From the IMG/VR virus record IMGVR_UViG_3300032322_001765, positions 62,001 to 126,000 of that record: 64,000 nt of DNA; one strand, 5' to 3'. Below are positions 3,586-64,000 of this stretch, one piece after another. Made by a program: the position numbers and the translations under genes. The notes below the pieces were generated by a model. The model searched no databases and was not told where the DNA came from. It saw nothing but the letters and a program-made list of their open reading frames with translations. The number at the start of each line of letters is the position of its first letter. The stretch's first letter is position 1.

Positions 3586-3587
3586 TA

Positions 3588-3595
3588 GATAAATA
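3588..3595 (+). promoter_or_regulatory. Late-promoter-like GATAAATA
   Basis: Motif immediately upstream of the portal ATG; the same octamer occurs at 5383 and 9647. Confidence 0.55.
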
Positions 3596-3601
3596 TAAAT
3601 C

Positions 3602-8354: not shown

Positions 8355-9557
8355 ATGTCACAAGTTCTATTAGAAAACCGTTGGGACGAGACCAAAGAAG
8401 CCCTACTTGAAGGTCTTAAAGGTACTCGCCGTTCAACAATGAGTGTTATCTTAGAAAATACTCGCAAGCAGTTACTTTCAGAAAGTTCTGCAGGTACAAC
8501 AACCGCTGGTAATATTGCTACACTAAACCGTGTAATTCTACCAGTTATTCGTCGTGTGATGCCAACAGTTATCGCTAACGAATTAGTCGGTGTTCAGCCA
8601 ATGACTGGCCCAGTTGGTCAGATTCATACACTACGTGTACGCTATGCACAGTCATTAACTGACAACAGCGCAGCAAACACAAGCGTAACAGCAGGTGAAG
8701 AAGCATTAAGCCCATTCAAGATTGCTCAAGCTTACTCACGTACACCAGGTGGTGCAGCTAACCCAACAGTAACAAGCTACACAGCTAATGATACTGCTGC
8801 AATGGAAGGCAATGGCGGTCGTCAAATCAGCGTACAAATCTTACGTCAGGCTGTTGAAGCTAAGTCACGTAAGTTACAAGCACGTTGGACATTTGAAGCA
8901 GCACAAGATGCACAAAGTCAGCATGGTATTGATGTTGAAGCAGAAATTATGGCAGCACTTGCTCAAGAAATTACTGCTGAAATTGATCAAGAAATTCTAT
9001 TAAGCCTATCAACATTGGCTTCAACTGAATTTACATTCAACCAAGCTACTGTATCTGGTACTGCTACATTCGTTGGTGACGAACATGCTGCTTTAGCAGT
9101 TCTAATCAATCGTGTTGCAAACTTGATCGCACAACGTACTCGTCGTGGTGCTGGTAACTGGGCAGTTGTTTCCCCAGCAGCATTAACCGTACTACAGAGT
9201 GCTACAACTTCTGCATTTGCACGTACAACAGAAGGTACATTCGAAGCTCCAACAAATACTAAGTTCGTTGGTACACTAAATGGCGCAATGCGTATTTTTG
9301 TTAATACATATGCACCAGATACACAACCAGTATTAGTTGGTTACAAAGGTTCAAGCGAAACGGATGCAGCAGCATTCTACTGCCCATATATTCCATTAAT
9401 GAGCAGCGGTGTTGTTCTAGATCCATCAACATTCGAACCAGTAGTTAGCTTTATGACTCGTTATGGTTATATCGAGTTAACAAATACAGCGTCATCATTC
9501 GGTAACGCTGCTGACTACTTAGGTGAGATTGCTGTTCAGAACCTAACATTCCAATAA
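8355..9557 (+). CDS. gp23: Major capsid protein, T4 gp23 family
   Basis: Contains RRVMPTVIANELVGVQPMTGP, AKSRKLQARWTFEAAQD, EITAEIDQE, FYCPYIPL and FMTRYG. AGGAG SD upstream. Confidence 0.98.
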   Translation: MSQVLLENRWDETKEALLEGLKGTRRSTMSVILENTRKQLLSESSAGTTTAGNIATLNRVILPVIRRVMPTVIANELVGVQPMTGPVGQIHTLRVRYAQSLTDNSAANTSVTAGEEALSPFKIAQAYSRTPGGAANPTVTSYTANDTAAMEGNGGRQISVQILRQAVEAKSRKLQARWTFEAAQDAQSQHGIDVEAEIMAALAQEITAEIDQEILLSLSTLASTEFTFNQATVSGTATFVGDEHAALAVLINRVANLIAQRTRRGAGNWAVVSPAALTVLQSATTSAFARTTEGTFEAPTNTKFVGTLNGAMRIFVNTYAPDTQPVLVGYKGSSETDAAAFYCPYIPLMSSGVVLDPSTFEPVVSFMTRYGYIELTNTASSFGNAADYLGEIAVQNLTFQ

Positions 9558-48505: not shown

Positions 48506-49885
48506 ATGGCAGCAATAACAAAAATTACACCAATAGCGTTAGATGAAACAGCTAACTATACAGTTAATAATTTAACTGTAACATCTAACGTCAGTTTTGG
48601 TAACAGTAATTTAGGTAATTTATCAGTTGCTAATTTCTTTTCAGGCAATGGATCATTATTAACTTCACTTACAGGCGGTAATGTAACAGGACAAGTAGGT
48701 AATGCATTAATCGCTGGTACAGTGTACACTAATGCACAGCCAAATATTACAAGCGTTGGTACATTAAGTAGTCTAAGTGTAACTGCTAATGCAAGTGCTG
48801 GTAATATTTTAACAGATAACTTGTTATACGCTAATGGCACAGCATGGACTTTTGGTAGTGGATCATATTCAAATACAAATGTTGCTGCGTACTTACCTAC
48901 GTATACTGGTAATTTTACTGCTGGTAATGTTTCAGGCGCTAATTTAATCAGTGGTAATTTCTTAACCGGTACATTAACTACAGCAGCACAACCGAATATT
49001 ACTAGTGTTGGTACATTATCATCACTAACAGTTACTGGACTAATTACTGCAACAGCAAATGGTGTTAAAGCTGCAAATATTTACGATAGTACCGGTACAT
49101 TAACAATTGAAACAAAATACGGTAACTTAGCGGGTGATGCAGGAGTATATGGCAATTTAACTGTTGGTACAAGTGGTACCGGAAATATTACAGCGTATAA
49201 TGCTAACTTAGGTAATTTAGTTATTGGTAACTTCTTGCAAGGAACATTAACAACAGCACTACAACCAAATATTACTTCAGTTGGCACATTGTCTAATCTT
49301 ACAGTATCAGGTAATGTCTCATTGACTGGAGCAAATGTTTATGTAAGCAACGTAGCTAATTTAAAAATACCCGGCGGAACTGCTAATTATGTATTATCAA
49401 CTGATGGGACAGGTAACTTAAGTTGGGCAGCGCAAACTGGTGGCGGAGGTGGCGGCACACCTGGTGGTAGTAATACACAACTACAGTTTAACAATTCAAA
49501 TGCGTTTGGCGGTACAACTGGTTTAACATTTGATTCAGTTAATAATAGATTATCGATTACTAATTACACATTACCAACAAACGCATTAGGTAATATAAGT
49601 GGTAATACAACCATAAATTTAAATGCTGGTATGTATGTTACTGCTACTGTAACTGGTTCGGTAACTTGGACTTTTAGTAATTCAGCAACTTCGTCAAATG
49701 CTTCAGGCTTTATTTTAGAATTAACAAATGGTGGTAGCAGTACTCAAATTTGGCCTACTTCAGTTAGATGGCCAAGTGGTGTAGCACCTGCTCTCACAGT
49801 AACAGGTGTCGATTTACTTGCTTTTGTTACTGACGATAATGGCACTAATTGGCGTGGTGTCGCTTCAATGATTGATAGTAAATAA
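48506..49885 (+). CDS. Fibre protein with C-terminal WPxSVRWPxGxAP..D..F.T.D.G..W domain
   Basis: MAAITKITPIALD anchor and three QPNITS repeats. The C-terminal domain is of a type widespread at phage fibre ends. Confidence 0.8.
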   Translation: MAAITKITPIALDETANYTVNNLTVTSNVSFGNSNLGNLSVANFFSGNGSLLTSLTGGNVTGQVGNALIAGTVYTNAQPNITSVGTLSSLSVTANASAGNILTDNLLYANGTAWTFGSGSYSNTNVAAYLPTYTGNFTAGNVSGANLISGNFLTGTLTTAAQPNITSVGTLSSLTVTGLITATANGVKAANIYDSTGTLTIETKYGNLAGDAGVYGNLTVGTSGTGNITAYNANLGNLVIGNFLQGTLTTALQPNITSVGTLSNLTVSGNVSLTGANVYVSNVANLKIPGGTANYVLSTDGTGNLSWAAQTGGGGGGTPGGSNTQLQFNNSNAFGGTTGLTFDSVNNRLSITNYTLPTNALGNISGNTTINLNAGMYVTATVTGSVTWTFSNSATSSNASGFILELTNGGSSTQIWPTSVRWPSGVAPALTVTGVDLLAFVTDDNGTNWRGVASMIDSK

Positions 49886-49889
49886 TATT

Positions 49890-50378
49890 ATGGCAAATTT
49901 TGCATTAGTTGAAAATAACGTAATTATAGAAAGACATGATTTACTTCCAACAACATGGAGAAATGTTAGTGGATTAAGTTTGTTGAAAGATGATGAAGAA
50001 TTATTAAATAATTTAGGTTGGTATACAGTTACTAAAGTATATCCTAATTATGATATATCAACTCAGTATATCGACGGATATGAGTATTCTTTTGTTGATA
50101 ATAAAGTCTTAGAAACACCTATACTTAAAAACATTGAGATTGTTGTAATTTCTGAGGAAGAACGTTTTGCAACTTTATTAGCAGAATTAAGACTTAAAAG
50201 AGATAGCTTGTTAATTGAATCTGATTGGACACAATTAGCAGACGTACAAGCAAGTCACACAAATGATTGGAAAACAGCTTGGGCTAATTATAGGCAACAA
50301 CTTCGTGATTTACCAAACCTATGCATAGTGGGTCAGATAAATATATATGAAGTTATATGGCCTACTAAACCCGAGTAA
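49890..50378 (+). CDS. Phage tail/fibre assembly chaperone
   Basis: Start moved to ATG 49890 (MANFALVENN). The C-terminal RxxRDxLLxESDWTQLADV..W..YRQQLRDLP..WPxKP is the typical tail-assembly-chaperone signature. Confidence 0.85.
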   Translation: MANFALVENNVIIERHDLLPTTWRNVSGLSLLKDDEELLNNLGWYTVTKVYPNYDISTQYIDGYEYSFVDNKVLETPILKNIEIVVISEEERFATLLAELRLKRDSLLIESDWTQLADVQASHTNDWKTAWANYRQQLRDLPNLCIVGQINIYEVIWPTKPE

Positions 50379-50380
50379 AC

Positions 50381-53300
50381 ATGTTTTTCAAAGAATTTTT
50401 ATACAAAGCACAAACTCAAACTTTCACCTCCAATAAGCTTTTTACTTGGGGATTAGGCACATCTGGTCAATTAGGCTCTTACGGTGAATCAAATTTATCA
50501 CTAGTACAAGCAAGTGCCGGACAATCACACGTGCTTGCTATTACTAGTGATAGTAGATTGTTATCGTGGGGAGTTAACAGTGATGGTCAATTGGGCGATG
50601 GCACTACTATCAATAAATCTAATCCTGTACAGGTAGGTCAACCTGGTTGGAAAAAAGTAGCAGCAGGATTACTTCATAGTGTTGCAATTAGAAGTGACGG
50701 AACATTATTTTCATGGGGCTCAAATAGCGTTGGTCAATTAGGATTAAATTTAGGAACAGCGGCTACAGCTCGCCGGTCTAATCCAACACAAATTGGTTCA
50801 TTAGCAAACTGGATAGATATAAGTGGTAAAGCAACTACAACAATAGCATTAAATGAAGCTAGAGAACTGTATGCTTGGGGAAATAATAACTTAGGCCAAA
50901 TAGGTGTTAACGACACAATCAATAGATCAAGCCCCGTACAAATTGGAATAGGATTAAGTTGGTATAAAGTTTCTGTTGGTAGTCATGTTATGGGTGTTAC
51001 AGTGACTGGTGAACTATATGGTTGGGGAGCTAATGGGGCTGGTCAATTAGGAATAAATGCAACAAATAATAGAAGTAGCCCAACTCTAGTTGCTAATTCT
51101 GGTTATACTGATGTAAGCATAGGTGAAGGCCATACATTAGGATTAGCGTCAGGTAATTTATTGTTTGCTTGGGGAAATAACCTTGAAGGACAATTGGGTG
51201 ACGGTACAACTATATTAAAATCTAGTCCAGTACAAATAGGTTCAAGTTCTTTTACTTTTATTAGTGCAGCTTCTAGATTTAGTCAAGCAATAAGATTAGA
51301 TGGGGGATTGTTTGCTTGGGGATTAAACACAAGTGGTCAAATTGGAACTAATAATCAAATAGGTAGGTCAAGCCCAGTACAAGTAGGAACGAGTAGTTGG
51401 TCGCTAGTGGCAAGTAGTTTAGTGAGTGGTTGGGTTATAGGAACCACTTCTGACAAAACTGCATATGGATGGGGGGCGAACGGTTCAGGACAATTAGGTA
51501 ATAATACTACCATTACACGATCAAGCCCGACTTTAGTTGCAAGTTCAATTGTTGGTAATTATAGTGTGCCAATACAAGTAGGGACACTTTCATGGAATGC
51601 AATTTCAACTGGGGGTACACATACAATTGCATTAAGAAGTGATAATTTATTATTTGCATGGGGTTTAAACACTTCAGGCCAATTAGGTGACAATACAGCG
51701 ATAAGCAAGTCAAGCCCAGTGCAGATAGGTACAAGTAGTTGGACAGCAGTAACAGCAGGTGAAGCTGATAGTTCTTTTGCCATTAGAAGTGACAATACAT
51801 TATGGACTTGGGGTAACGTTACAACAAACTTAACTGGTGGAAATATATTAACAGAAAGTTGGCAACAGGTAACCAATAATGCAAACAGTTCAATTGGATT
51901 AAGAGCAGACGGTACATTATGGACATGGGGAGAAAATAGTTTTGGTCAAATTGGTAATAATACCACAATTAATAGATCAAGCCCTGTACAAATTGCAAGT
52001 GATAAGAGTTGGTTAAAATTAGGTGAAAATAACAATGTAAATAATGCGGTTGCGGCAATAGACTCAAATTATAAACTTTGGGTATGGGGTCGCAATAACA
52101 CTGGTCAACTAGCCACAGGTGATACGATTAATAGATCAAGTCCTGTATTAGTAATGAGTGATAAAAGCTGGAGTATGGTATCAGCAAGTAAAGGTATTAC
52201 TACTGATGGTAAACTTTGGAGTTGGGGAGCAGGTGCTACCGGTTTAATTGGAGACAACACCACCGTTGATAAATCAAGCCCAGTGCAGTTAAGTGTTGGT
52301 ACAAGTTTTACATTGGTTTCCGGAGCTTCAGACTCTAATCGTCATACATTTGCTATAAGCACAACTGGATTGTTGTATGGTTGGGGATTTAATAACACAG
52401 GACAATTAGGTTTAGGTAATACACTAAACAGATCCCAACCTACTTTATTGGCCTCCCCGTTCGACACGTTTTCGTGGAATTTCGTTAGTGTTGGCGGCAC
52501 TGATGGTACTGGCTCAACAGGTGGCCATACATTAGCTTTAAGAAATGATAATACTTTATATGTTTGGGGATTAAACAACGTAGGACAATTAGGTAATAAT
52601 ACTACTATCAACCGAAGCTCACCATTACAAGTATCATTTGTTAATATTCCACTAAGTTGGGCTACAGTGGCAGCTGCTGCTTCAAGATCAACTGCTTTAG
52701 ATTTTGATGGAAAATTATGGGGTTGGGGTATTAATACGACCTACGGCGCAGTTGGTGACTCTACAACAGTTAACAGATCATCCCCCGTAATATTAACAAG
52801 CACTGGTGTTACTTTTGCAAAAATTACGTCAGGATATTTTCACAGTAATGGAATAAGAGATGATGGATATTTATATGCATGGGGCGCAAATAATTTAGGA
52901 AACTTAGGAAATAATACAACAATTAATAGATCCTCACCGGCACTAATAAGTTCTATTCCAACAAACTTATCAAGTCCAGTGCAACTAGGTGTAGGTAAAT
53001 CAAATTGGAGTGCTATCCATTCTGGAACTTCAACACATGCAGCAATCGATGCGACAGGCGCGTTATACATTTGGGGAAGTAATGCGACAGGTCAATTAGG
53101 AAATAATAGTGTTTTTACTCGAACAGGATTAAGAGTACTTGACAATAATAGTTGGAATAGTGTCAGTGTTGGTGCAAGTCATGTGTTAGCCATACGAAAT
53201 AATAATCAATTGTATGCATGGGGCGGTAATGCAAGTTTTCAAATTGGCGATAATTCCAGTATTAATAAATCAAGTCCGATTCTCATTGATTCGGCTAGCT

Positions 53301-56300
53301 GGCTAAGTGTAAGTGCAGGTATTAACCACTCTCTTGCAATTAAATCCGGGGGAGGTTTATATGCATGGGGTAGTGGTTTATTTGGTCAAACCGGTATTAT
53401 TACAGACATTTATTCTTGGACACAAATAAATGCTGGTACAAACTTTGTTTTAGGTGTAAGACAAGATAGTACATTATGGGGTTATGGACTAAACACTAGT
53501 GGTCAACTAGGAGATAGCACTGCCGCTACAAAATCTAGCCCCACTCAAGTAGGTACGACTAGTTGGAGTAAAATTAGTGCAGGAGGCTCAAATGCACTTG
53601 GTATCACTATAGATGGTAAATTATTTTCTTGGGGTTCTGGATCAACATTTCAACTCGGTGATGGCACAACAATAAACAAATCTAGTCCAGTACAAATAGG
53701 AACCAGTAGCTGGTCACAAATTACTACAGGTACAGCACATAGTTTAGCTATTGACATAAATGGCAGATTATTTGGTTGGGGTACATCTACAGCATTAAAT
53801 GCTAGCACAGCTCCATTTAGTTGGACAGTTGTATCTGAAAATACATCACATGTAGCAGCAGTTCGAAGTGACGGATTGTTGTTTGTATGGGGTCTCAATA
53901 GTTCAGGACAAGTTGGAGACAATACAACTATTAATAAATCAAGTCCAGTACAAATAGGTACAAGTAGTTGGTTAACTGTAAGTAGTGGTGTCGATCATAC
54001 ATTAGCTATAACAAGCGATTATAGATTATTTGCCTGGGGCGGTAACACAGGTTTCCAACTAGGTGATAACACTACTATAAGTAAATCAAGTCCGGTATTA
54101 TTGTCAGGTCCTAGTTGGACAACGGTAGTCGCTGCAAATAGTTATAGTATGGCATTAAAATCTAATAATACATTATGGGCGTGGGGTTTAGGAACTTCAG
54201 GTCAATTAGGTACACTAACTGAACCTAAGTCATGGATAGAATTAAGTGCAGGCAATAGTACAAGTTTAGCGATCCGCAGTGATAATACCTTATGGGGATG
54301 GGGATTAAACACTAGTTTTCAAATTGGAAATGGCGCAAGTGTAACACAATCTAGTCCAGTACAAGTAGATAGTTCATTGAGTTGGATAAAAGTAAGCTCA
54401 GGCAATAATCATGGCTTAGCAATTACTAATACAGGAGTTTTATATGGCTGGGGAACAAATGCTCAAGGTCAAGTCGGGAATAATACATCAGTAAATCGTA
54501 GTTTACCTACCCTAGTTGATTCATCCGGTAGTTGGAGTGTAGTGAGTGCAGGTAACAGTTTCTCATTGGGAATAAAAGAAAATAAATTATACACTTGGGG
54601 ACAAAATAGCTTAGGTCAGTTAGGACAGGGTGATACTATAACAAGATTAAGCCCAACTCAAGTAGGATTGAACAATTGGACTGTAATAACTTCAAGCGAA
54701 ACTAATAATTATGCAGGTGCGATTGATAGTAGTAATAGATTATTTTTATGGGGAGTAAACACTAATTACCAATTAGGTGATGGCACAACAACAAATAGAA
54801 ATAGCCCTGTTGCAGTATTTGCTACTGGTACAAGTAGTTATGTTCAAGTAAGTGTAGGAGCAAGTCATACATTAGCAGTTCAAAGTGATGGCACATTGTG
54901 GGCCTGGGGGTCAAATACAAATTACATATTAGGATTAGGTGATACGAATATACGTTCAATACCAACACAAATGGGTTCAAGTAGTTGGACAAGTGTAAGT
55001 GCAGGAACAGATCATAGTATGGCAATCAAGTCTGACGGCACACTTTGGGGTTGGGGATTTAATCTTTTTGGACAAGTTGGTCTTGCAACAACTGTGTATT
55101 CTTGGACTCAAGTTGCAAACACTGGCCTCACAACACACGCTATTAGAAGTGATGGTTTACTATTTGGCTGGGGTTTAAATACTTCAGGGGAAATAGGGGA
55201 TAACTCGATTATTAATAAATCGAGTCCTGTACAAGTAGGAATCAAAACATGGAAAAAAGTTTATAATTTTACGGCTCTAGTTGGAAATCTTGCTTCTGTA
55301 TTAGCCATTGACAATAACGACAATTTGTTTGCTTGGGGCAATAACACATCCGGAAATTTAGGGGACAATACAGTAATTAGTAGATCCTCACCTGTTGCGG
55401 TGGTGATTAAAGGAACAGGTAGCTATACACAAGTCTTTGTTGGTCCGGCTACAGTTGCAATACAAAATGATGGAACACTTTGGTCATGGGGTGCTGGATC
55501 CTTTGTCGGAGACAACACAACCATTAGTAGATCAAGTCCAGTGCAGATAGGTTCTAGTACATGGTCTGCAGTAGGAGGTGCTTTATCCACTATTGCTGCT
55601 ATAGATGCAACTGGTAGATTATTTACTTGGGGTAACCAATCAGCATCGGGTAGTGGCTCGTTAGGCACAAACGATCTTATAAATAGATCAAGTCCTACAC
55701 TAGTTGCAGGCGCACCAGGTGCATTTAGTTGGACAAGTGTAAGTTCTGGTGGGGCTAATCATGTTTTAGCTATTCGTGAAAATGGAGCTGCGTACGGAAC
55801 GGGTTTAAATGCTCAAGGTCAGTTAGGTGACAACACTGCAACTAGCAAGTCAACTTTTACTTTAGTTTCTGGGACAACAAGTTTTACTCAAGTAAGGTGT
55901 GGATTTAGTTTTACAATAGCATCAGCAAGTGACGGCACGCTTTGGGGTTGGGGGAACAATGATTGGGGGCAACTTACTACTACTTTACCAATTGCTGCTA
56001 ACAGATCAAATCCGGTTCAAATAGTAGCGCCAGGCCCAACAGTGTATTCTACTGGTCAATATAATTTAGCCACAATCTATTCTAATGGTTTATTGTATAA
56101 TCAAGGATACAATTTAAATGGGATGCTAGGAGATGGAACAACAACTAGTAAGTCGCTACCTGTTCAAATCGGAAACAATCCGATCATAAATATATCAGTA
56201 CCCGTACAAATTGGTACCGGCAGCTGGAATCAAGTAAATGCAGGTACTCAATATACATTAGCAAGAGATACTAATAATGTTCTTTATGCTTGGGGTCAGG

Positions 56301-56326
56301 ATACATCAGGACAATTAGGTTTTTAA
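50381..56326 (+). CDS. Giant RCC1/BLIP-II-type beta-propeller repeat protein, part 1 (1981 aa, ~40 blades)
   Basis: Repeats of SW..VSAG..H.LAI..DG.L(F/Y/W).WG.N..GQLG..TT.N(R/K)SSPVQ(I/V)G. Ends in mid-repeat (GQLGF*). Confidence 0.9.
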   Translation: MFFKEFLYKAQTQTFTSNKLFTWGLGTSGQLGSYGESNLSLVQASAGQSHVLAITSDSRLLSWGVNSDGQLGDGTTINKSNPVQVGQPGWKKVAAGLLHSVAIRSDGTLFSWGSNSVGQLGLNLGTAATARRSNPTQIGSLANWIDISGKATTTIALNEARELYAWGNNNLGQIGVNDTINRSSPVQIGIGLSWYKVSVGSHVMGVTVTGELYGWGANGAGQLGINATNNRSSPTLVANSGYTDVSIGEGHTLGLASGNLLFAWGNNLEGQLGDGTTILKSSPVQIGSSSFTFISAASRFSQAIRLDGGLFAWGLNTSGQIGTNNQIGRSSPVQVGTSSWSLVASSLVSGWVIGTTSDKTAYGWGANGSGQLGNNTTITRSSPTLVASSIVGNYSVPIQVGTLSWNAISTGGTHTIALRSDNLLFAWGLNTSGQLGDNTAISKSSPVQIGTSSWTAVTAGEADSSFAIRSDNTLWTWGNVTTNLTGGNILTESWQQVTNNANSSIGLRADGTLWTWGENSFGQIGNNTTINRSSPVQIASDKSWLKLGENNNVNNAVAAIDSNYKLWVWGRNNTGQLATGDTINRSSPVLVMSDKSWSMVSASKGITTDGKLWSWGAGATGLIGDNTTVDKSSPVQLSVGTSFTLVSGASDSNRHTFAISTTGLLYGWGFNNTGQLGLGNTLNRSQPTLLASPFDTFSWNFVSVGGTDGTGSTGGHTLALRNDNTLYVWGLNNVGQLGNNTTINRSSPLQVSFVNIPLSWATVAAAASRSTALDFDGKLWGWGINTTYGAVGDSTTVNRSSPVILTSTGVTFAKITSGYFHSNGIRDDGYLYAWGANNLGNLGNNTTINRSSPALISSIPTNLSSPVQLGVGKSNWSAIHSGTSTHAAIDATGALYIWGSNATGQLGNNSVFTRTGLRVLDNNSWNSVSVGASHVLAIRNNNQLYAWGGNASFQIGDNSSINKSSPILIDSASWLSVSAGINHSLAIKSGGGLYAWGSGLFGQTGIITDIYSWTQINAGTNFVLGVRQDSTLWGYGLNTSGQLGDSTAATKSSPTQVGTTSWSKISAGGSNALGITIDGKLFSWGSGSTFQLGDGTTINKSSPVQIGTSSWSQITTGTAHSLAIDINGRLFGWGTSTALNASTAPFSWTVVSENTSHVAAVRSDGLLFVWGLNSSGQVGDNTTINKSSPVQIGTSSWLTVSSGVDHTLAITSDYRLFAWGGNTGFQLGDNTTISKSSPVLLSGPSWTTVVAANSYSMALKSNNTLWAWGLGTSGQLGTLTEPKSWIELSAGNSTSLAIRSDNTLWGWGLNTSFQIGNGASVTQSSPVQVDSSLSWIKVSSGNNHGLAITNTGVLYGWGTNAQGQVGNNTSVNRSLPTLVDSSGSWSVVSAGNSFSLGIKENKLYTWGQNSLGQLGQGDTITRLSPTQVGLNNWTVITSSETNNYAGAIDSSNRLFLWGVNTNYQLGDGTTTNRNSPVAVFATGTSSYVQVSVGASHTLAVQSDGTLWAWGSNTNYILGLGDTNIRSIPTQMGSSSWTSVSAGTDHSMAIKSDGTLWGWGFNLFGQVGLATTVYSWTQVANTGLTTHAIRSDGLLFGWGLNTSGEIGDNSIINKSSPVQVGIKTWKKVYNFTALVGNLASVLAIDNNDNLFAWGNNTSGNLGDNTVISRSSPVAVVIKGTGSYTQVFVGPATVAIQNDGTLWSWGAGSFVGDNTTISRSSPVQIGSSTWSAVGGALSTIAAIDATGRLFTWGNQSASGSGSLGTNDLINRSSPTLVAGAPGAFSWTSVSSGGANHVLAIRENGAAYGTGLNAQGQLGDNTATSKSTFTLVSGTTSFTQVRCGFSFTIASASDGTLWGWGNNDWGQLTTTLPIAANRSNPVQIVAPGPTVYSTGQYNLATIYSNGLLYNQGYNLNGMLGDGTTTSKSLPVQIGNNPIINISVPVQIGTGSWNQVNAGTQYTLARDTNNVLYAWGQDTSGQLGF

Positions 56327-59300
56327 ATGCCAACGAATTCACCAGTTTTATTAGGAAACAAATTACCATATAATTTACCAGAGCCTCAAAAAGTTGACAA
56401 CAATAGTTGGACACAAGTTAGTGCATTTAACGACTTTACAGTAGGGTTGAGGTCTAACAGTATCTTGTATGCATGGGGCACAAATAATTCTTACCAAATT
56501 GGTGATGGTACTACACTAAACAAATCAACACCAACTCAAATTTCAAATAGTAGTTTCTTAGTGGTAAGTGCGGGCTTTGATCATAGTGCTGCGATTACCA
56601 CTAACAATACACTATTTGTTTGGGGAAACAGTGCTAGTACTTTTGTTCAAACTATTAATTTCTCATGGACTAAAGTTGCAAGTTCAGGTAACCACACATT
56701 AGCTATTCGTAATGATAATACATTATGGACTTGGGGATTAAACACCGCAGGTCAATTAGGTGACGGTACAACTATTAATAAATCAAGTCCAGTACAAATT
56801 GGTTCAGGTACATGGAATGATATTAGTGCAGCAGTAAGTCATTCTGTAGCAATTGACAGTGATTACAAACTTTATGTTTGGGGTCAAAACAATGCCGGAC
56901 AAATAGGCGACAATACATCGATTAACAAATCTAGTCCCGTTCAAATAGGTTCGAATAGTTGGCTACAAGTTGCATCTGGTAATAGTTATACTGTTTCAAT
57001 AAACTCATTAAATGAAATGTTTGCGTGGGGTTTAAACACAAGTTATCAACTTGGGGATAGAACAGTTATTAACAAATCTAGCCCTGTACAAATAGGTTCT
57101 ACTTTTAGTTGGTCAAGTGTCAGTGCAGGCGTAGATCATAGTTTAGCAATAACAACCGATAATCAATTATATATTTGGGGTAATCCAGCTGGTGCAGGTA
57201 TACAAGAACCAACTACAATATATTCATGGACGCAAGTAACCGCAGGTAATATTTACACAACTGCTATTAGAAGTGATGGCAGTCTTTGGACATGGGGTAG
57301 GAACACTGAAGGACAATTAGGTCAAAACAATGTTATACTTCAAAGTAGTCCTGTACAGGTAGGTAATAGTAGTTACACACAAGTATCAGGCAAATGGAGT
57401 CATACAAGTGCAATTAAAGCTGACAGTACAATAATAGGATACGGTAGCAATACATACGGGGAGCTTGGTGATGGCACAACTATTGCAAAATCAAATCCAG
57501 TTACATTATCTTCTAGCTTTACAAACACAAGCTGGACTTCAGTTAGTGCAAGTGTAAATCACACAGCAGCAATTAGAAATGATGGTAGAATTTATATTTG
57601 GGGTTTAAATACATCAGGTCAATTAGGTGACAATACTGCAATAAGCAAATCAAATCCTGTTAGTTTAGCAAGCCCATTTGACACAAGTAGTTGGACACAA
57701 GTAGATTTAGGAAGAGACTTCGCCCTTGCAAGAAGATTAGATGGTAAATTATATGCATGGGGATTTAATGATTTAGGACAATTGGGAATTGTAAATTCTA
57801 CTTTCCCAATTGGTGGCGATACTTTAAACAGAAGCAATCCAGTATTAATCAGTGATAGTAGTTGGATTCAAGTAAGTGCAGGCTTTGATCATAGTTTAGC
57901 TATACGCTCGGACAATACATTGTGGACATGGGGTAGCAGTGTGGCCATAGGATTAGTGACAGAACCAATGTCATGGCTCGCTGTGTCAGGTGGTGCAACA
58001 CACACATTAGGTATAAGAGATAATGGCACGTTATGGACATGGGGTACTAATGATCAAGGTCAATTAGGCAATTCAACAACTGTTATACGCTTAAGCCCAG
58101 TTCAAATCGGATTAACTAGATGGGCAAGTGTAAGTGCAGGTAGTAGTTATTCTCACGCTATTGATCAAGCTGGTTTATTATATGCATGGGGTTTAAATTC
58201 AAGTGGACAGTTAGGCGATAATTCATCGATTAATAAATCAAGCCCAGTACAGATAGGATCTAGCAGCTGGATAGAAGTAACTGATGGGGTTAATCATACA
58301 CTAGCAATTGATGCAGATGGTAGATTATATGGATGGGGTCAATTTACTAGTGGTCAAACAGGTGTATACGACGAAATTTATTCTTGGACACAAATCACTA
58401 GTGGATTGGGATTACGCACAGATGGTACCTTATGGGCTTGGGGGCAATTAACAGGTGATGGTACTACAATTATTAGGTCTAGTCCAGTACAGATAGGGTC
58501 AAGTGATTGGTCCTCAATAGCGCCTATATTTTCTATGATTGATCCAAAAGCTGCATTAAAAACAAACGGTACGCTTTGGATGTGGGGAACTAATGCACTA
58601 GGACAATTAGGACAAAATGATACCATTAATAGAAGTTCACCTGTACAGGTTGCAGGAAGTTGGAATCAAATAAGTGTGCAATCTGGTCATGCTGCTGCAA
58701 GAAATGTAAGCAATATTATCTATACTTGGGGCAAAAATGAAGCAGGCCAATTAGGTGATGGCACTACAATCGATAAATCAAGTCCTGTTTTATTGAGTGG
58801 TGCGTTTGGTACTACTAGTTGGACATCTGTTAGTGTTGGCTGGTCTCATACCGCAGCTTTAAGAAATGATAACATAATTTATATTTGGGGCTGGAACAAT
58901 CAGGGGCAGTTAGGTACTGGTCTTACCACAAGTAGATCCAATCCAGTAACTTTAGACGGAGCATTTGCTACAAGTAGTTTTGTAGCTGTAAGCAGTGGTG
59001 CTTTACACACACTTGCCGTCAGATCCGATAGTAGACTAGTAGCATGGGGATATAATTTAGAAGGTTCTTTGGGTGACAATACAACTATTAATAAGTCAAC
59101 ACCTGTAGTAATTGGAACTAGTAGTTGGTCAGTAGTTACCGCTGCACGAACTAATAATCTAGCAGTCACTACAACAGGCACACTTTGGTTTTGGGGTGCT
59201 GATGGAGGTAGTGGCTCATCAGCTCAAAATGCCACTATTAACAGAAGCGCGCCAACACAAATAGGAGCATTAACTAATTGGGCATCAGCCGGTGTAGTTT

Positions 59301-62300
59301 CAGCAATAAACAATTTAGGTGTGGCATTTGTTTGGGGCTCGGGTGGATCAGCCAACACTTCAAATACCTACTTACTTAATACAACAGTTGACGCATCAAG
59401 CCCCGTGCAAGTTGGCGGATTTAGATGGCCCCCTACGAAATACTATAGTCCACAACAAGTAGGAACAAGTAGTTTTTCTTTAGTAAGTGCAGGTAGTTCT
59501 TATTCAATGGGTATTAACGCAGAGGATTTATTATATGGCTGGGGAGTAAACAATTCAGGTCAGCAAGCAGATGGAACTACAGTAGCAAAATCAAGTCCGG
59601 TACAAATCACAACAAGTAGTTATATTAGTGTAAGTGCTGGATTCGATCATGTACTTGCTATTGCAAGTAATGGAACATTATGGACATGGGGAAATAGTGC
59701 AGCTATAGGATTAGTAGTTCAACCTCAATCGTGGTCAGAAATATCAAGTGGCAGTAGTCATACACTAGCAATACGTAGTGATGGTGCATTATTTGCCTGG
59801 GGTATCGGAACATCCGGTCAATTAGGTAACACTTTAGCAATTTCAAATTCAAGCCCAGTGCAAGTAGGAACAAGCAGTTGGAGTCAAGTTAAAGCCGGAA
59901 CCAACGTTAGTTTAGCAATAGACACAAATAATCGATTGTTTGGATGGGGACTTAATACTTCAGCACAACTTGGCATCGGTGTAATTACAAATAGATCAAG
60001 TCCTGTGCTAATAACTTCTGGAAGTTGGATAGGATTAGCAGCCGGTGGCACACATACATTTGCAATTGATTCAACTAATAAACTTTATGGCTGGGGAAAT
60101 AATGATTCAGGTCAAATCATACCATATGGAAGTTATTTTCCAACAGGCTACAGTCCTGTAAGTGCAGGTGGAGGATTCTTTGCTGCGATAAGAACATCTG
60201 ATTCAGGATTATTACTTTGGGGTAGAAATAACTTTGGTCAATTAGGTCAAGGAAATACAATTGACAGATCCAATCCTATACAGTTAGGTTCAAATAGTTG
60301 GAAACAAGTAGCAGCAGGTACAAGTTTTATTTCTGCTATTAGAAGTGACGACACATTATGGACATGGGGTTTAAACACCTCAGGTCAATTAGGAGATAAC
60401 ACATCAATAAGCAAATCAAGCCCTGTGCAAGTTGCTGGCTCATGGCTTTCAATATCAGGTGGTGCGACCCACGCATTAGGTGTTAAAATAGATAATACTC
60501 TTTGGAGTTGGGGTTCAAACGATGTTGGGCAATTAGGTGATAGTACCGTAGTAAATAAATCTAGTCCAGTACAAATTGGTACTAGAAGTTGGTCAAGTGT
60601 AAACGCTGGAAATAGTTATAGTTTAGCAATCGATACAACAGGTATCGTTTATGGTTGGGGTTGGAATACAAGCGGTCAATTAGGCGACGGCACAACTACG
60701 AATAGAAATTCTCCAGTATTACTAGCATCACCTTTTAATACTACTTCATTTTCTCAAGTCACTGCTGGATTTTCACATTCCTTAGGATTTACTACTTCTG
60801 GTTTATTATATTCATGGGGAGGTAATAGTGTAGGAGAATTAGGTTTAGGTCTTATTACTAGTAGATCAAACCCAACACAAATTACTCAATATTCTGGATT
60901 ATTGCCTCAAAATGGTAGTTGGTCTTTTATTTACGCAGGACAACAAATTTCTACTGCTATCAACAATAATAATTTATATGTTTGGGGATCAGGCGCTAGT
61001 GGACAATTAGGATTAGGCGATACTATTAATAGATCAATACCGGTACAAACAGGTATAGGATATAGTTGGAAAGCTGCTGCACTAGAAGTAGCAACCAATT
61101 TGGGTGCAGGATATTTAAGGTCAGATAATTCAGTTTGGGTTACTGGAAATAATACATTTGGTAACTTAGGCAATAGCACAACTGTTAATAGGTCTGCACC
61201 TGTGATAGTTGGTTCGACAAGCATATCAACTCCAGTACAAGTGGGTACAAGTAGTTGGAGTCAAATTAGCGCAGGTGCAAGTTACAGTGCAGGTATAGAT
61301 AGTTTAGGAAAACTATATACTTGGGGATTAAATAATACCTATCAATTAGGTAATAATACAACAGTCGATAGAAATGACGTTATCAATCAATTAACTAATA
61401 GTAGTTGGACAAGTGTAAGTACTGGTTTGAATCACGTTTTAGCTATAGCATCAAATAATAGTTTACATGCATGGGGATCGGCTGCGGCTGTTGGATTGTC
61501 TAATGTCACCGCACTATCATGGAGTACAATTGCAAGTGGTGGACAATCATCACACCTTGCTGCTATTAGAAGTGATGGTGCATTATTTACTTGGGGTTTA
61601 AACACTAATGGCCAATTAGGTGATGGTACAACAATAAACAAATCAAGTCCAACACAAATAAGCGGAACTATTAGCTGGACTTCGGTAGCAGTAGATTTAT
61701 CAAATACAATGGCTATCAGATTGGGCGGCACTTTATTTGTTTGGGGAGGTAACGCTAGTGGTCAGCTAGGATTAAGTGATACTATTAATAGATCAAATCC
61801 AGTATTGTTAGATTATAATAGTTGGAGTCAAATATCTGTAAACACATCTCATACAGCAGGTATTAGAAGTAATCAACTGTATGTATGGGGAAATAATGTA
61901 AGTGGTCAAATTGGTGACAATACAACCATCAATAAATCAAGTCCTGTACAGGTAACTGGTAGTTGGAATTCAGTTAGCGCCGGCGCTCAATATACTATAG
62001 GTATAAACAATTCTAGTTTATTATTTGTTTGGGGCGTCAACGCTGCCTTCCAATTAGGTACAGGTAACACGGTTAGCAGATCAAGTCCTGTACAGATTGC
62101 AACAGGAACTAGTTATTCAATAATTTCTGCAGGACCAACACATGCGGTTGCAATAGATACAACTAGTAAGCTATGGACATGGGGACAACAATCAAGCGTA
62201 GGGATTGATGTTAATTCATGGACTCAGGTTAGTATAGGTAATCAGTTTGTTCTAGCTATAAGAAATGACGGAAGATTATTTGCTTGGGGAGTCAATTCGT

Positions 62301-63480
62301 CTGGTCAATTAGGATTGGGTGATACGATACTAAGGTCTAGTCCTGTATTAGTGGGTAATAATAGTTGGTCGGCAATTTCAGCGGCTATTGGTGGAAATAA
62401 TAGCGCAGGTATTGCAAGCGACGGTAAATTATTTACTTGGGGTAATAATAATACGGGACAATTAGGTGATGGCACAACAATAAACAAATCGAGTCCAGTA
62501 CAGATTTCCTCAGGATCAAGCTTTAGTCTTGTTGCAGCAGGCCCAGGATTCCTGTTGGCTGCATCTACTAATTATGCATTATTTACTTCAGGAGGTAATA
62601 GTGTTGGACAATTAGGTGATGGCACAACAATAAACAAATCTACTCCAGTACAAATAACTGATCCGTCAGTTCAAAGTTGGATTTTTATAAGTGCAGGAAC
62701 TAGCTATAGTGGTGGCATAGATAATTTAGGAAAGTTATATACTTGGGGAACAAATTTCCTTGGTATTTTAGGTCATGGCGACACAATTAATCGTTCAAAA
62801 CCAACTATAGTATCAGGATCGACTAGTTGGTCTAAAGTAAGTGCAGGTGGTGTTAACACATTAGGTATTACTAATTTAGGAGCACTATATGCATGGGGAC
62901 AGAATAACGTAGGACAAATAGGTGATGGCACTACTATAAACAAATCTAGCCCAGTACAAATAGGTTCAAGTAGTTGGTCCGCAGTTGCAGCTAGTGATAG
63001 TGTATCTATGGCTATTAGGTCAGATAATACTCTATGGACTTGGGGGCATAATAGTGTAGGACAATTGGGTATAGGTCTTACTACAAATAGATCAAGTCCG
63101 GTGCAAGTTGTAGCTGGCGCACAATGGTCTTCAATAGCTAGTTCTGGTAATAATACTATGGTAGCTATCTCAATAGCTACTGGAACTAGTAATAAACTTT
63201 ACTTGTGGGGCTTCAATGCCTCAGGACAATTAGGTACAGGAGACACAGTAAATCGTAGTAGCCCCACATTACTAGCAGGAACTACAGGAACTGTTATACC
63301 AACTAAAATTTTAAATTATCAAAGCTTTAGCCAAGTAAGCACTGGTATATCTTACACTATAGCTAAAAGAGCTAATGACAATGTTTTAATGGGATGGGGT
63401 ATTAATACTTCTGGACAGTTAGGAGATAATACCGCAACACAAGCAAGAAGGAGTAATCCTACATTAATTGGATATAGAAC
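50438..63480 (+). repeat. RCC1-like repeat array (~88 blades over two ORFs)
   Basis: Counted by hand from the xWG..GQLG cores: about 40 in ORF 50381 and about 48 in ORF 56327. Confidence 0.88.
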
Positions 63481-64000
63481 TTTTGTAGACGCATCAGAAA
63501 ATAATATTACCTCAGTAACATTCACTGGCTCACCAAAAAATGTTGATTTTAGTCCTTTTGCAAATCAGCCATATAATACTGTCACTAGTGGTGGTAGCAC
63601 ACAATTTAGTGGATTAGGTGATGTCATTAACTGTGGCACAAACTCAGTATTTGCATTTGGTACAGGTCCGTTCTGTATTGAGTTTTGGTGCTATAATAAT
63701 ATATTGAAAGCTGTAGCAGCAGTAACAACCAATCCATCTGTCACAAGTGTTACAGATTCATTCATTGTGGGATGGGACGCCGCTGGTTCATATAACGTAG
63801 TGGTAGGAAATACTACATTTGCTTCTTCTCCGGGATTTATAAAGACTAATGTTTGGCAACATATTGTTTGTTGTCGTGATAGTTCCAATAATGTGGCTGT
63901 GTTTATTGATGGTGTGCGAGGATCTCCCGGCGTCGTTGCTAGCAACTTAGTCAGAACAACATTAGGAATAGGAGATTTCCCTACAACCCCATCTCAAAAT
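56327..64000 (+). CDS. Giant RCC1-repeat protein, part 2 (>2558 aa, ~48 blades, then a LamG domain; runs off window)
   Basis: Not in the ORF track because it has no stop in the window. The ATG directly follows the TAA of part 1 in the same frame. I translated it through to 64000 without meeting a stop. From ~63482 it reads FVDASENN..FSPF..FAFGTGPFCIEFW..WQHIVCCRD..VFIDG (LamG). Confidence 0.88.
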   Translation, partial: MPTNSPVLLGNKLPYNLPEPQKVDNNSWTQVSAFNDFTVGLRSNSILYAWGTNNSYQIGDGTTLNKSTPTQISNSSFLVVSAGFDHSAAITTNNTLFVWGNSASTFVQTINFSWTKVASSGNHTLAIRNDNTLWTWGLNTAGQLGDGTTINKSSPVQIGSGTWNDISAAVSHSVAIDSDYKLYVWGQNNAGQIGDNTSINKSSPVQIGSNSWLQVASGNSYTVSINSLNEMFAWGLNTSYQLGDRTVINKSSPVQIGSTFSWSSVSAGVDHSLAITTDNQLYIWGNPAGAGIQEPTTIYSWTQVTAGNIYTTAIRSDGSLWTWGRNTEGQLGQNNVILQSSPVQVGNSSYTQVSGKWSHTSAIKADSTIIGYGSNTYGELGDGTTIAKSNPVTLSSSFTNTSWTSVSASVNHTAAIRNDGRIYIWGLNTSGQLGDNTAISKSNPVSLASPFDTSSWTQVDLGRDFALARRLDGKLYAWGFNDLGQLGIVNSTFPIGGDTLNRSNPVLISDSSWIQVSAGFDHSLAIRSDNTLWTWGSSVAIGLVTEPMSWLAVSGGATHTLGIRDNGTLWTWGTNDQGQLGNSTTVIRLSPVQIGLTRWASVSAGSSYSHAIDQAGLLYAWGLNSSGQLGDNSSINKSSPVQIGSSSWIEVTDGVNHTLAIDADGRLYGWGQFTSGQTGVYDEIYSWTQITSGLGLRTDGTLWAWGQLTGDGTTIIRSSPVQIGSSDWSSIAPIFSMIDPKAALKTNGTLWMWGTNALGQLGQNDTINRSSPVQVAGSWNQISVQSGHAAARNVSNIIYTWGKNEAGQLGDGTTIDKSSPVLLSGAFGTTSWTSVSVGWSHTAALRNDNIIYIWGWNNQGQLGTGLTTSRSNPVTLDGAFATSSFVAVSSGALHTLAVRSDSRLVAWGYNLEGSLGDNTTINKSTPVVIGTSSWSVVTAARTNNLAVTTTGTLWFWGADGGSGSSAQNATINRSAPTQIGALTNWASAGVVSAINNLGVAFVWGSGGSANTSNTYLLNTTVDASSPVQVGGFRWPPTKYYSPQQVGTSSFSLVSAGSSYSMGINAEDLLYGWGVNNSGQQADGTTVAKSSPVQITTSSYISVSAGFDHVLAIASNGTLWTWGNSAAIGLVVQPQSWSEISSGSSHTLAIRSDGALFAWGIGTSGQLGNTLAISNSSPVQVGTSSWSQVKAGTNVSLAIDTNNRLFGWGLNTSAQLGIGVITNRSSPVLITSGSWIGLAAGGTHTFAIDSTNKLYGWGNNDSGQIIPYGSYFPTGYSPVSAGGGFFAAIRTSDSGLLLWGRNNFGQLGQGNTIDRSNPIQLGSNSWKQVAAGTSFISAIRSDDTLWTWGLNTSGQLGDNTSISKSSPVQVAGSWLSISGGATHALGVKIDNTLWSWGSNDVGQLGDSTVVNKSSPVQIGTRSWSSVNAGNSYSLAIDTTGIVYGWGWNTSGQLGDGTTTNRNSPVLLASPFNTTSFSQVTAGFSHSLGFTTSGLLYSWGGNSVGELGLGLITSRSNPTQITQYSGLLPQNGSWSFIYAGQQISTAINNNNLYVWGSGASGQLGLGDTINRSIPVQTGIGYSWKAAALEVATNLGAGYLRSDNSVWVTGNNTFGNLGNSTTVNRSAPVIVGSTSISTPVQVGTSSWSQISAGASYSAGIDSLGKLYTWGLNNTYQLGNNTTVDRNDVINQLTNSSWTSVSTGLNHVLAIASNNSLHAWGSAAAVGLSNVTALSWSTIASGGQSSHLAAIRSDGALFTWGLNTNGQLGDGTTINKSSPTQISGTISWTSVAVDLSNTMAIRLGGTLFVWGGNASGQLGLSDTINRSNPVLLDYNSWSQISVNTSHTAGIRSNQLYVWGNNVSGQIGDNTTINKSSPVQVTGSWNSVSAGAQYTIGINNSSLLFVWGVNAAFQLGTGNTVSRSSPVQIATGTSYSIISAGPTHAVAIDTTSKLWTWGQQSSVGIDVNSWTQVSIGNQFVLAIRNDGRLFAWGVNSSGQLGLGDTILRSSPVLVGNNSWSAISAAIGGNNSAGIASDGKLFTWGNNNTGQLGDGTTINKSSPVQISSGSSFSLVAAGPGFLLAASTNYALFTSGGNSVGQLGDGTTINKSTPVQITDPSVQSWIFISAGTSYSGGIDNLGKLYTWGTNFLGILGHGDTINRSKPTIVSGSTSWSKVSAGGVNTLGITNLGALYAWGQNNVGQIGDGTTINKSSPVQIGSSSWSAVAASDSVSMAIRSDNTLWTWGHNSVGQLGIGLTTNRSSPVQVVAGAQWSSIASSGNNTMVAISIATGTSNKLYLWGFNASGQLGTGDTVNRSSPTLLAGTTGTVIPTKILNYQSFSQVSTGISYTIAKRANDNVLMGWGINTSGQLGDNTATQARRSNPTLIGYRTFVDASENNITSVTFTGSPKNVDFSPFANQPYNTVTSGGSTQFSGLGDVINCGTNSVFAFGTGPFCIEFWCYNNILKAVAAVTTNPSVTSVTDSFIVGWDAAGSYNVVVGNTTFASSPGFIKTNVWQHIVCCRDSSNNVAVFIDGVRGSPGVVASNLVRTTLGIGDFPTTPSQN

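Follow-up and report, generated by a model that had tools for sequence, protein, structure and literature searches.

A jumbo phage encodes a 6,506-residue, two-chain protein whose 105 RCC1 repeats read as 15 seven-bladed β-propellers inserted one inside another up to nine levels deep. This is deeper than any nesting we found in the literature, although the three-dimensional fold is only partly confirmed. We analyzed a window of 64,000 nucleotides (positions 62,001 to 126,000 of IMG/VR record IMGVR_UViG_3300032322_001765), together with the remainder of the gene from the source contig of 220,867 bp. An initial annotation, made from the sequence alone, had described RCC1 blades read as brackets, with whole propellers placed in the loops of other propellers. 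That observation is confirmed, and the sequence evidence for nesting is stronger than could be seen from the window. The interpretation placed upon it is supported in part, as set out below; its core claim, that propellers are inserted into the D-to-A loop of other propellers recursively and always in units of 7 blades, is strongly supported at the sequence level.

Two open reading frames of RCC1 repeats

ORF A (50381–56326, plus strand, as are all features given here) encodes 1981 aa. Its TAA stop codon is followed directly by the ATG of ORF B in the same frame (56324–56329). ORF B starts at 56327 and runs off the window, which contains the first 2558 of its 4525 aa; the gene ends about 5.9 kb further on, at a window-equivalent position of about 69904. 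Both ORFs are RCC1/RLD repeats throughout, with matches to PF00415, PF13540 and PF25390 far above their cut-offs. Only 17 residues precede the first strand, and searches against Pfam and PHROGs found nothing but RCC1 and Laminin_G families, i.e., no N-terminal domain that might anchor a fiber to the virion. Five stretches of Laminin_G_3 (PF13385, concanavalin A-like lectin/glucanase; E = 6.6e-59) lie in the last 2,304 aa of ORF B.

The division between the ORFs falls in the D-to-A loop (GQLGF / MPTNSPVLLG), just before the closing strand of one propeller. Since ORF B continues in the same frame and the blade is interrupted exactly in mid-loop, we considered whether a single 6,507-residue chain might be made by read-through of the TAA, or whether the stop is a recent mutation or an error. 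However, the stop is immediately followed by ATG, and the same sequence occurs in contigs from two samples. Moreover, the relatives that we denote L006/L007 and L057 are cut at the same loop with an ATGA overlap that shifts the frame, so that read-through cannot join them there. L057 has a second cut, at an opening junction. We therefore regard a single chain as unlikely.

The possibility that the array is an assembly artefact, or a decaying repeat array without a folded product, was also considered, because metagenomic repeat regions are prone to misassembly. This is very improbable. There are no frameshifts or internal stops in 19.5 kb, the blades are only 31–49% identical so that there are no long DNA repeats to collapse, the contig sequence is identical in two samples, and the grammar described below is perfect and shared with distant relatives.

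Spacer lengths define a bracket grammar in which every unit has seven blades

Segmentation of both ORFs with repeat profiles had been suggested at the outset as a check on the nesting. We used an HMM of the B-C-D strands, with five degenerate blades added by hand; without these, four units would count 6 blades. The three of them that lie inside the segments modeled below are β-meanders in the AlphaFold2 models. The spacers between blade cores fall into three non-overlapping length classes. Seventy-two are normal (F, 19–30 aa), 14 are short and lack the inner strand (S, 7–12 aa), and 14 are long and carry two inner strands (L, 33–42 aa). Five more are normal spacers interrupted by a lectin-like domain.

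Reading short and long spacers as opening and closing brackets, a stack parse of the whole protein gives exactly 7 blades at all 14 closures and 7 for the outermost unit. In 1,000,000 shuffles of the same tokens, 66,995 were valid bracket strings, and none had more than 7 of 15 units equal to 7. The insert boundaries agree with those of the initial annotation to within about 4 codons, and its statement that every insert closing in the window has seven blades, including one that closes across the ORF junction, is upheld. Two corrections are required. The depth, given as up to 8 levels, is 9 levels counting the root (8 levels of insertion), and the number of propellers, given as about 15, is exactly 15 once the part beyond the window is read.

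The grammar could be tested by prediction. The eight brackets still open at the window edge required 1, 2, 2, 2, 3, 2, 4 and 1 further blades between closures. The remaining 1,967 aa of ORF B were fetched afterwards, and show exactly that order.

The alternative is that the propellers are linear beads on a string made of consecutive blades, short spacers being merely blades with a missing inner strand and long spacers linkers between propellers. Twelve of the 120 homologues listed, about a tenth, are indeed plain arrays of 21 or 28 normal units. Yet in this protein the long spacers are separated by 8, 9, 22, 1, 21, 12, 14, 2, 2, 2, 2, 3, 2 and 4 blades, not by 7, and a linear reading would leave "propellers" of 1–4 blades between successive closers in the C-terminal 1,900 aa. 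The low confidence of the orphan strands in the predicted structures (see below) could be taken in favor of a linear arrangement, but we consider it very unlikely.

Positions of the fifteen propellers

The root propeller P00 begins at 50381–50476 with the 17 N-terminal residues followed by strand D of blade 1 (NKLFTWG) and its loop. Its blades 2–3 are at 51542–51850 and blades 4–6 at 52952–53404, while blade 7 and strands A, B and C of blade 1 are at the C terminus of ORF B, beyond the window. P01 (50477–51541) is a leaf propeller of 7 blades inserted after root blade 1, and is followed by the orphan strand NYSVPIQVG. P02 (51851–52951) is a 7-blade leaf inserted after root blade 3. P03 is inserted after root blade 6, with blades 1–3 at 53405–53806 (blade 3 at ORF A residues 1108–1134) and blades 4–7 at ORF B residues 4223–4432 (blade 4 at 4239–4265), beyond the window. 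P04 has blades 1–3 at 53807–54217 and blades 4–5 at 56399–56647; blades 6–7, with Laminin_G_3 domain 5, lie beyond the window. P05 has blades 1–6 at 54218–55090 and blade 7 at 56174–56296, and its closing strand is the first 10 residues of ORF B (56327–56356). P06 (55091–56173) is a 7-blade leaf inserted after P05 blade 6. ORF A thus carries P01, P02 and P06 whole, P05 without its closing strand, the first 3 blades each of P03 and P04, and the root from strand D of blade 1 to blade 6.

The remaining propellers are in ORF B. P07 has blades 1–4 at 56648–57208, with blades 5–7 beyond the window. P08 has blades 1–5 at 57209–57958, with blades 6–7 and Laminin_G_3 domain 4 beyond the window. P09 has blades 1–3 at 57959–58372 and blades 4–5 at 59417–59716, with blades 6–7 and Laminin_G_3 domain 3 beyond the window; the 7-blade leaf P10 (58373–59416) is inserted after its blade 3. 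P11 has blades 1–3 at 59717–60133 and blades 4–5 at 61214–61504, with blades 6–7 and Laminin_G_3 domain 2 beyond the window; the 7-blade leaf P12 (60134–61213) is inserted after its blade 3. P13 has blades 1–5 at 61505–62206, and blade 6 with strand A of blade 7 at 63278–63466; strands B–D of blade 7 and the closing strand lie beyond the window. P14 (62207–63277), inserted after P13 blade 5, is the deepest leaf (level 9), with 7 blades. Laminin_G_3 domain 1 starts at 63467, between strands A and B of blade 7 of P13, and runs through the window edge (64000) to about residue 2608 of ORF B.

Excised parents resemble leaf propellers, and relatives follow the same grammar

If an insert interrupts a parent, removing it should restore a normal propeller, and failure of the excised parents to form intact blades had been named in advance as evidence against nesting. 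We examined this by length and by profile. For matched open and close pairs the summed S + L spacer length is 46.2 ± 3.6 aa, compared with 44.8 aa for two normal spacers. Excised parents are 332–367 aa in length and leaves 348–367 aa. Four of six excised parents match an HMM built from the leaves end to end as one domain, although excised P09 and P13 gave fragmented matches. Uncut readings always break into pieces.

Homologues had likewise been proposed as a test. Relatives at about 35% identity follow the same grammar and the same kind of cut. L006 reads as 13 propellers, all of 7 blades, in our reading by eye of its spacer table, and L057 ORF1–2 also reads as units of 7. Among further relatives, the complete 1,093-aa protein P0055 is nested to 3 levels, and P0074, P0089 and P0118 fit as well. 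Automatic parsing of 120 distant homologues was noisy.

Predicted structures of inserts and parents

Structure prediction of the leaves had been named beforehand as a test, the nesting to be doubted if consecutive linear propellers resulted with the orphan strands as unstructured linkers. AlphaFold2 folds both inserted propellers tested, P14 and P06, at high confidence as closed rings of 28 strands each, including the closing strand; the first strand of each long spacer is used to complete the ring. P14 has pLDDT mostly above 90. A PDB search with the whole model finds one UVR8-like ring (TM 0.9 over about 369 columns, rmsd 1.5 Å) whose length fits P14. By strand count the first strand (B of blade 1) and last strand (A of blade 1) of the leaves belong to the same blade. 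These leaves therefore have the character of complete autonomous domains with adjacent termini.

The parents are less well defined. In the first model both orphan strands are coil with pLDDT below 50, and the parent blades after the insert reach only 56–77. In the second model P05 has 27 strands, the orphan being strand A of its blade 7, but with pLDDT of 46–57. The values of pTM are 0.46 and 0.55. Coordinates and PAE were not inspected, and contact between parent blades across an insert was never seen, so that although blade counts, spacer sums and excised parents indicate at the sequence level that a host continues after its insert, the models do not settle whether the two parts form one domain in three dimensions. 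For the interrupted parents, seven blades per ring is shown only by counting. AlphaFold2 did not fold the one Laminin_G_3 domain modeled.

Genomic context

The gene lies in the tail or fiber module of the phage, downstream of genes for the portal, a T4-type major head protein and several tail-fiber-like genes. The immediately preceding gene (49872–50378) has a tail fiber assembly chaperone domain, and follows a tail-fiber-like gene at 48506–49885. Other giant Laminin_G_3 proteins are also encoded. The major head protein, of the T4 gp23 type, is 65–68% identical over its full length to those of PA5oct-like, E. coli jumbo and Vibrio jumbo phages, placing the phage with the T4-type jumbo myoviruses of the PA5oct/phAPEC6-like group. 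RCC1 propellers occur in annotated phage tail fiber proteins. The suggestion in the initial annotation of a receptor-binding tip of the virion is only an inference from gene neighborhood; there is no proteomic or expression evidence, and for this uncultured metagenomic phage neither presence in virions nor a requirement in adsorption was examined. The product is two polypeptides, not one, and five inserted Laminin_G_3 domains are an additional finding.

Discussion

The explanation that we favor, with good confidence, is that the two ORFs encode one assembly of 15 RCC1-type propellers arranged as a tree. In this view the unit of growth is a whole propeller opened at the hairpin between strands A and B of its first blade. 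It starts with strands B, C and D, runs through six full blades, and ends with a closing strand A. The unit sits in the loop that leads from strand D of one parent blade to strand A of the next. At each opening the parent blade is therefore followed by a short spacer with no strand A, and at each closing two strand-A segments follow each other, the first closing the child and the second, the orphan, starting the next parent blade. The chain walks round the tree. P00 carries P01, P02 and P03, and the spine runs P03 > P04 > P07 > P08 > P09 > P11 > P13 > P14, with side leaves P05 > P06, P10 and P12. On the way back, five spine propellers (P13, P11, P09, P08 and P04) carry a Laminin_G_3 domain between strands A and B of their seventh blade. 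The outermost propeller would be closed by the usual RCC1-family velcro, with strand D from the N terminus of ORF A and strands A–C from the C terminus of ORF B. The chain is made as two translationally coupled polypeptides, cut just before the closing strand of P05, and four propellers (P00, P03, P04 and P05) would therefore be built from both chains.

Our analysis has established the grammar, its predictive power, its conservation, the conserved cut and, in the AlphaFold2 models, the folding of the inserted units as closed rings. By contrast, the docking of parent halves in three dimensions, the assembly of the two chains, and the function are deduced rather than observed. We take the function to be that of a large, rigid, branched, multivalent glycan-binding adhesin or fiber of a jumbo T4-type myovirus. 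It is also conceivable that the grammar is right but that parent halves are completed between molecules by domain swapping, giving oligomers or a lattice rather than a closed two-chain tree. The conserved cistron cuts show that the family tolerates completion of propellers in trans, and parent halves are separated by up to about 5,000 residues of synthesis. However, single-chain relatives such as P0055 have the same grammar with N and C termini meeting in one blade, and nothing in the data requires oligomers. We consider this possibility unlikely.

The furthest-reaching interpretation, which we judge more likely than not, is of a natural protein built by a recursive rule, in which whole seven-bladed propellers are grafted into the same loop of other propellers, 8 insertions deep, such that the chain makes a complete tour of a 15-node tree and returns to its starting blade. 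The tour is cut into two (in relatives, three) coupled cistrons, so that four rings would form only when both chains meet. This would be the deepest domain nesting of which we could find a record, and a family-wide growth mechanism for phage adhesins. β-propellers are textbook examples of contiguous repeat domains, and surveys of domain insertion report that inserts are smaller than their hosts and that nesting reaches at most six levels. Here the insert is as large as the host, the rule is applied recursively, one host can carry three inserts, and the nest is also cut into separate chains. If confirmed in three dimensions, this sets a new limit for discontinuous domains. The pattern of short and long spacers provides a simple sequence grammar that finds such proteins among thousands of metagenomic RCC1 proteins now annotated as plain repeats, and suggests how phages can grow rigid, branched, multivalent binding structures by adding one module at a time. 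It also poses a sharp folding problem, and a natural test case for domains whose halves are far apart in sequence, in that three blades of P03 would have to wait for about 5,000 residues of synthesis, and for a second chain, before their ring can close.

The repeats belong to the same family (Pfam RCC1, RCC1_2 and WD40_RLD) as the RCC1-like domains of RCC1, UVR8, the HERC2 RLDs and BLIP-II, with seven four-stranded blades per ring. Known RLDs are contiguous single rings, sometimes with a small foreign insert, while here 8 of the 15 rings are interrupted by one to three whole rings of the same kind. Long arrays of RCC1 repeats, some annotated as tail fibers, are found in phage or extracellular proteins, including giant RCC1-type genes of Oscillospiraceae, the RCC1-like proteins of phAPEC6, and tail fiber proteins of Pseudomonas phages PollyC and Littlefix. 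These are described as simple repeat arrays, and none of the papers that we read mentions nesting. Rings closed by strands or a blade from another chain occur in Sec13 with Nup145C or Sec31, and in oligomeric propellers. There one blade is donated, whereas here four rings would be shared between two chains, at 3+4, 3+4, 6+1 and 27+1 strands. Homologous domains inserted into one another repeatedly are seen in the recursively nested SBHM domains of the Si3 insertion in cyanobacterial RNA polymerase β′ (RpoC2), given as the example of complex nesting, at six levels, in a 2026 survey of 2.7 million domains (PMC13114784). Those are small sandwich-barrel domains forming one linear nest in an enzyme subunit, whereas here the units are 350-aa propellers, the nest is branched with 8 levels of insertion, the insert is as large as the host, and the chain is cut into two cistrons.

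Spacer Classes and Bracket Parse of the RCC1 Repeats

We have studied two ORFs on the + strand, within positions 62001-126000 of a viral contig of 220,867 bp (IMGVR_UViG_3300032322_001765). ORF A runs from 50381 to 56326 of the window (1981 aa). ORF B starts at 56327, immediately after the TAA of ORF A and in the same frame, and runs off the window. The remainder of ORF B was obtained from the same contig, and from an identical contig of a second sample, giving a total length of 4525 aa. Both ORFs comprise RCC1/RLD repeats from end to end. A 105-aa ORF lies antisense inside ORF A (51559-51876, minus strand), and is most likely a chance ORF in a repeat region.

Segmentation of both ORFs by repeat profile had been named beforehand as a test of the nested arrangement. 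For this purpose, we constructed an HMM of the B-C-D strand core of the repeat from this protein, located all the cores and measured the spacers between them. The spacers fall into three classes that do not overlap. There are 72 normal spacers of 19-30 aa, consisting of the GQLG loop plus one strand A (SSPvQvG), 14 short spacers of 7-12 aa with no strand A, and 14 long spacers of 33-42 aa with two strand-A segments. Five further normal spacers are interrupted by a domain of ~220 aa. Five degenerate blades were placed by hand; three of these lie inside the segments for which structures were predicted (blade 7 of propeller P06, blade 3 of P14 and blade 7 of P13), and the AlphaFold2 (AF2) secondary structure shows each as a three- or four-strand meander. 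The openings and closures of inserted propellers proposed in the initial annotation agree with our coordinates to within about four codons, and its observation is thus confirmed.

We read short spacers as opening brackets and long spacers as closing brackets. A stack parse then gives exactly seven blades at all 14 closures and seven for the outermost unit, with a depth of nine. The same 104 tokens were shuffled 1,000,000 times, generating 66,995 valid bracket strings, none of which had more than 7 of the 15 units equal to seven.

The parse was also tested blind. Using only the window, the stack left open at position 64000 was [6,3,5,4,5,5,5,6]. If the rule holds, the unseen part must supply 1, 2, 2, 2, 3, 2, 4 and 1 blades, each group followed by a closer, and then end. 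The remaining 1,967 residues, which were read afterwards, do exactly that. The last 46 residues of ORF B are strands A, B and C of a blade, and the missing strand D of that blade is the N-terminus of ORF A (NKLFTWG). This closure by an N-terminal strand D and C-terminal strands A, B and C is the norm in single-chain relatives. A linear reading, in which propellers are made of consecutive blades, cannot account for this, since the long spacers would then be separated by 8, 9, 22, 1, 21, 12, 14, 2, 2, 2, 2, 3, 2 and 4 blades.

The parse gives 15 propellers and 105 blades. P00 is the root, and carries P01 after blade 1, P02 after blade 3 and P03 after blade 6. P03 carries P04 after blade 3. P04 carries P05 after blade 3 and P07 after blade 5, and P05 carries P06 after blade 6. 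P07 carries P08 after blade 4, and P08 carries P09 after blade 5. P09 carries P10 after blade 3 and P11 after blade 5, P11 carries P12 after blade 3 and P13 after blade 5, and P13 carries P14 after blade 5. Five Laminin_G_3 domains (Pfam) are found at ORF B residues ~2381-2608, 2720-2946, 3064-3311, 3431-3665 and 3938-4173, the first starting at window position 63467. All five sit at the same place, between strands A and B of the seventh blade, and only in propellers of the deep spine (P13, P11, P09, P08 and P04); P07, P03 and the root have none.

Internal Consistency of the Nested Units

For each matched pair of opening and closing spacers, the sum of the short and long spacer lengths is 46.2 ± 3.6 aa, compared with 44.8 aa for two normal spacers. 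The child has therefore simply been spliced into a normal loop.

It had been proposed in advance that removal of the inserts should leave intact parents. Parents excised in silico are 332-367 aa long, and the leaves are 348-367 aa. P05, P07, P08 and P11 match an HMM built from the six leaves end to end as a single domain, with scores of 300-355, against 221-336 for leaves left out in turn. P09 and P13 gave fragmented matches. Excision was performed within one chain only, so that parents joining pieces of the two ORFs (P00, P03 and P04) were not built; the closing strand of P05, which lies in ORF B, was left out, the junction spacer was only measured, and no read-through protein was analyzed. 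The uncut reading of the same length always breaks into two or three pieces.

We also looked for a parent-child or blade-phase signal that might date the insertions. All the propellers are 31-49% identical, with no clear nearest parent and only a weak same-index signal for blades 1, 4 and 5, and these data do not reveal the order of the insertions.

Relatives of the Nested Protein

A megablast search of the neighborhood against cultured phages found nothing. Scans of IMG/VR and of metagenome contigs found no relative of ORF A above 45% identity apart from the source contig and its identical twin, although one short fragment of 345 nt reached 56%; the substantial matches are at 28-42% identity. 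A comparison of close relatives for gain or loss of single 7-blade blocks, which had been suggested as a check on the topology, was consequently not made. Nevertheless, distant relatives obey the same grammar.

The relative L006 (twin L007) has two ORFs of 2378 and 2484 aa. From its spacer table, which was read by eye rather than re-run through the script, it has 13 propellers, all of seven blades. This includes a closer with three A strands, where a child sat after its parent's seventh blade. ORF1 and ORF2 of a second relative, L057 (JACCDM011604243.1, 2912-21313), also parse with seven throughout. P0055, a complete single-chain protein of 1,093 aa with near-identical consensus blades encoded on a 167-kb contig, is a clean nest of three propellers at three levels, and is the best small model system for the topology. 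P0074, P0089 and P0118 also parse cleanly.

Automatic tokenizing of 120 listed distant homologues, using thresholds tuned on the present protein, was noisy. Seven is the commonest count at closures (34 of 115), but only four proteins parse cleanly, and we therefore rely on the cases checked by hand. Twelve of the 120 are plain arrays of 21 or 28 units. Both architectures therefore exist in the family.

The Array Is Divided between Cistrons

In the window the cut between the two ORFs is GQLGF-TAA-ATG-PTNSPVLLG, lying in the D-to-A loop just before the strand that closes P05. In L006/L007 the cut is GQIGDLT / MSITTNRSNPTQL, with an ATGA overlap that changes frame. The array of L057 is divided into three cistrons. 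One cut has the same ATGA overlap before a closing strand (MSNSTNRSSPVQV), while the other is at an opening junction, where the next ORF starts with strand B (MYSWISVASG). The window sequence is identical in two samples. We conclude that these are real, translationally coupled cistrons. P05 (27 + 1 strands), P04 (3 + 4 blades), P03 (3 + 4 blades) and P00 (6 + 1 blades, with the velcro blade shared) would be completed between chains, an assembly that is inferred and has not been shown.

Structure Prediction of the Inserted Propellers

A prediction giving rings of consecutive blades, with the second strand of each long spacer (the orphan strand) as an unstructured linker, had been specified in advance as evidence against nesting. 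Two segments were modeled using AF2. The first covers ORF B residues 1668-2697, using a mixed MAFFT alignment of 32 rows. P13 blades 1-5 and the whole of P14 have pLDDT mostly above 90, and P14 has 28 strands, including its closing strand. A ring in the model superposes on UVR8 with TM 0.87-0.91 and an rmsd of 1.5 Å over about 369 columns. Both orphan segments are coil with pLDDT below 50, P13 blades 6-7 reach only 56-77, and the Laminin_G domain is not folded. Foldseek searches against PDB and BFVD show only single-ring matches.

The second model covers ORF A residues 1270-1981. P05 blades 1-6 are at pLDDT 80-97, and P06 has 28 strands, including its closing strand. The orphan NISVPVQIG is a strand, followed by three more. 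That is a complete seventh blade for P05, but at a pLDDT of 46-57.

The AF2 models thus confirm that the inserts are closed rings that use the first strand of the long spacer, and are compatible with the orphan being strand A of the next parent blade. Ring membership was not measured, since neither model was examined as coordinates, and the predictions do not settle whether the parent halves dock. The interpretation made in the initial annotation, that whole propellers are grafted into the loops of others, is strongly supported at the sequence level and supported in part by the AF2 models. The bracket grammar, its prediction of the unseen sequence, its recurrence in relatives, the cistron cuts and the predicted closure of the inserted rings emerge directly from the analysis, while the docking of parent halves, the completion of propellers between chains and the function of the protein are inferred.

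Genomic Context and Likely Role

The window contains a portal gene (3602-5380) and a T4-type major head protein (8355-9557) that is 65-68% identical to those of PA5oct-like and other jumbo myoviruses, including PA5oct, phAPEC6-like E. coli jumbo phages and Vibrio phage 2.275.O. phAPEC6 is reported to encode eleven RCC1-like proteins (PMC7247149). There are several tail-fiber-like genes, and a fiber assembly chaperone just upstream of ORF A. Three further giant ORFs (24671-29752, 30231-35393 and 41115-45200; 1693, 1720 and 1361 aa) each have He_PIG or TIG Ig-like domains and five or six Laminin_G_3 domains, so that the phage carries a whole battery of lectin-like structural proteins. A 2642-aa ORF in the structural module (12568-20496) has no Pfam match at all. 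Downstream of ORF B (L002 6976-11352) lie two methyltransferase-like genes and a 2OG-Fe(II) oxygenase-like gene, which mark the end of the structural module.

RCC1 propellers occur in annotated tail fiber proteins of Pseudomonas phages. We therefore favor a virion-borne, branched, multivalent glycan-binding structure. However, there is no N-terminal anchor domain and no experimental evidence, and we regard this functional reading as about as likely as not.

Comparison with Known Systems

Searches of the open literature for nested or inserted propellers found nothing relevant. The propeller-evolution paper that we examined does not mention insertion, and giant RCC1 genes have been described as plain repeats. 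A 2026 survey of domain insertion names six-level nesting of SBHM domains in cyanobacterial RpoC2 as its example of complex nesting, and also finds inserts to be consistently smaller than their hosts (PMC13114784). With the one caveat that the docking of parent halves has not been seen in three dimensions, the present case is the same principle applied to a different fold. It goes deeper (eight insertions), is branched, has inserts as large as the host, and is split into two chains.
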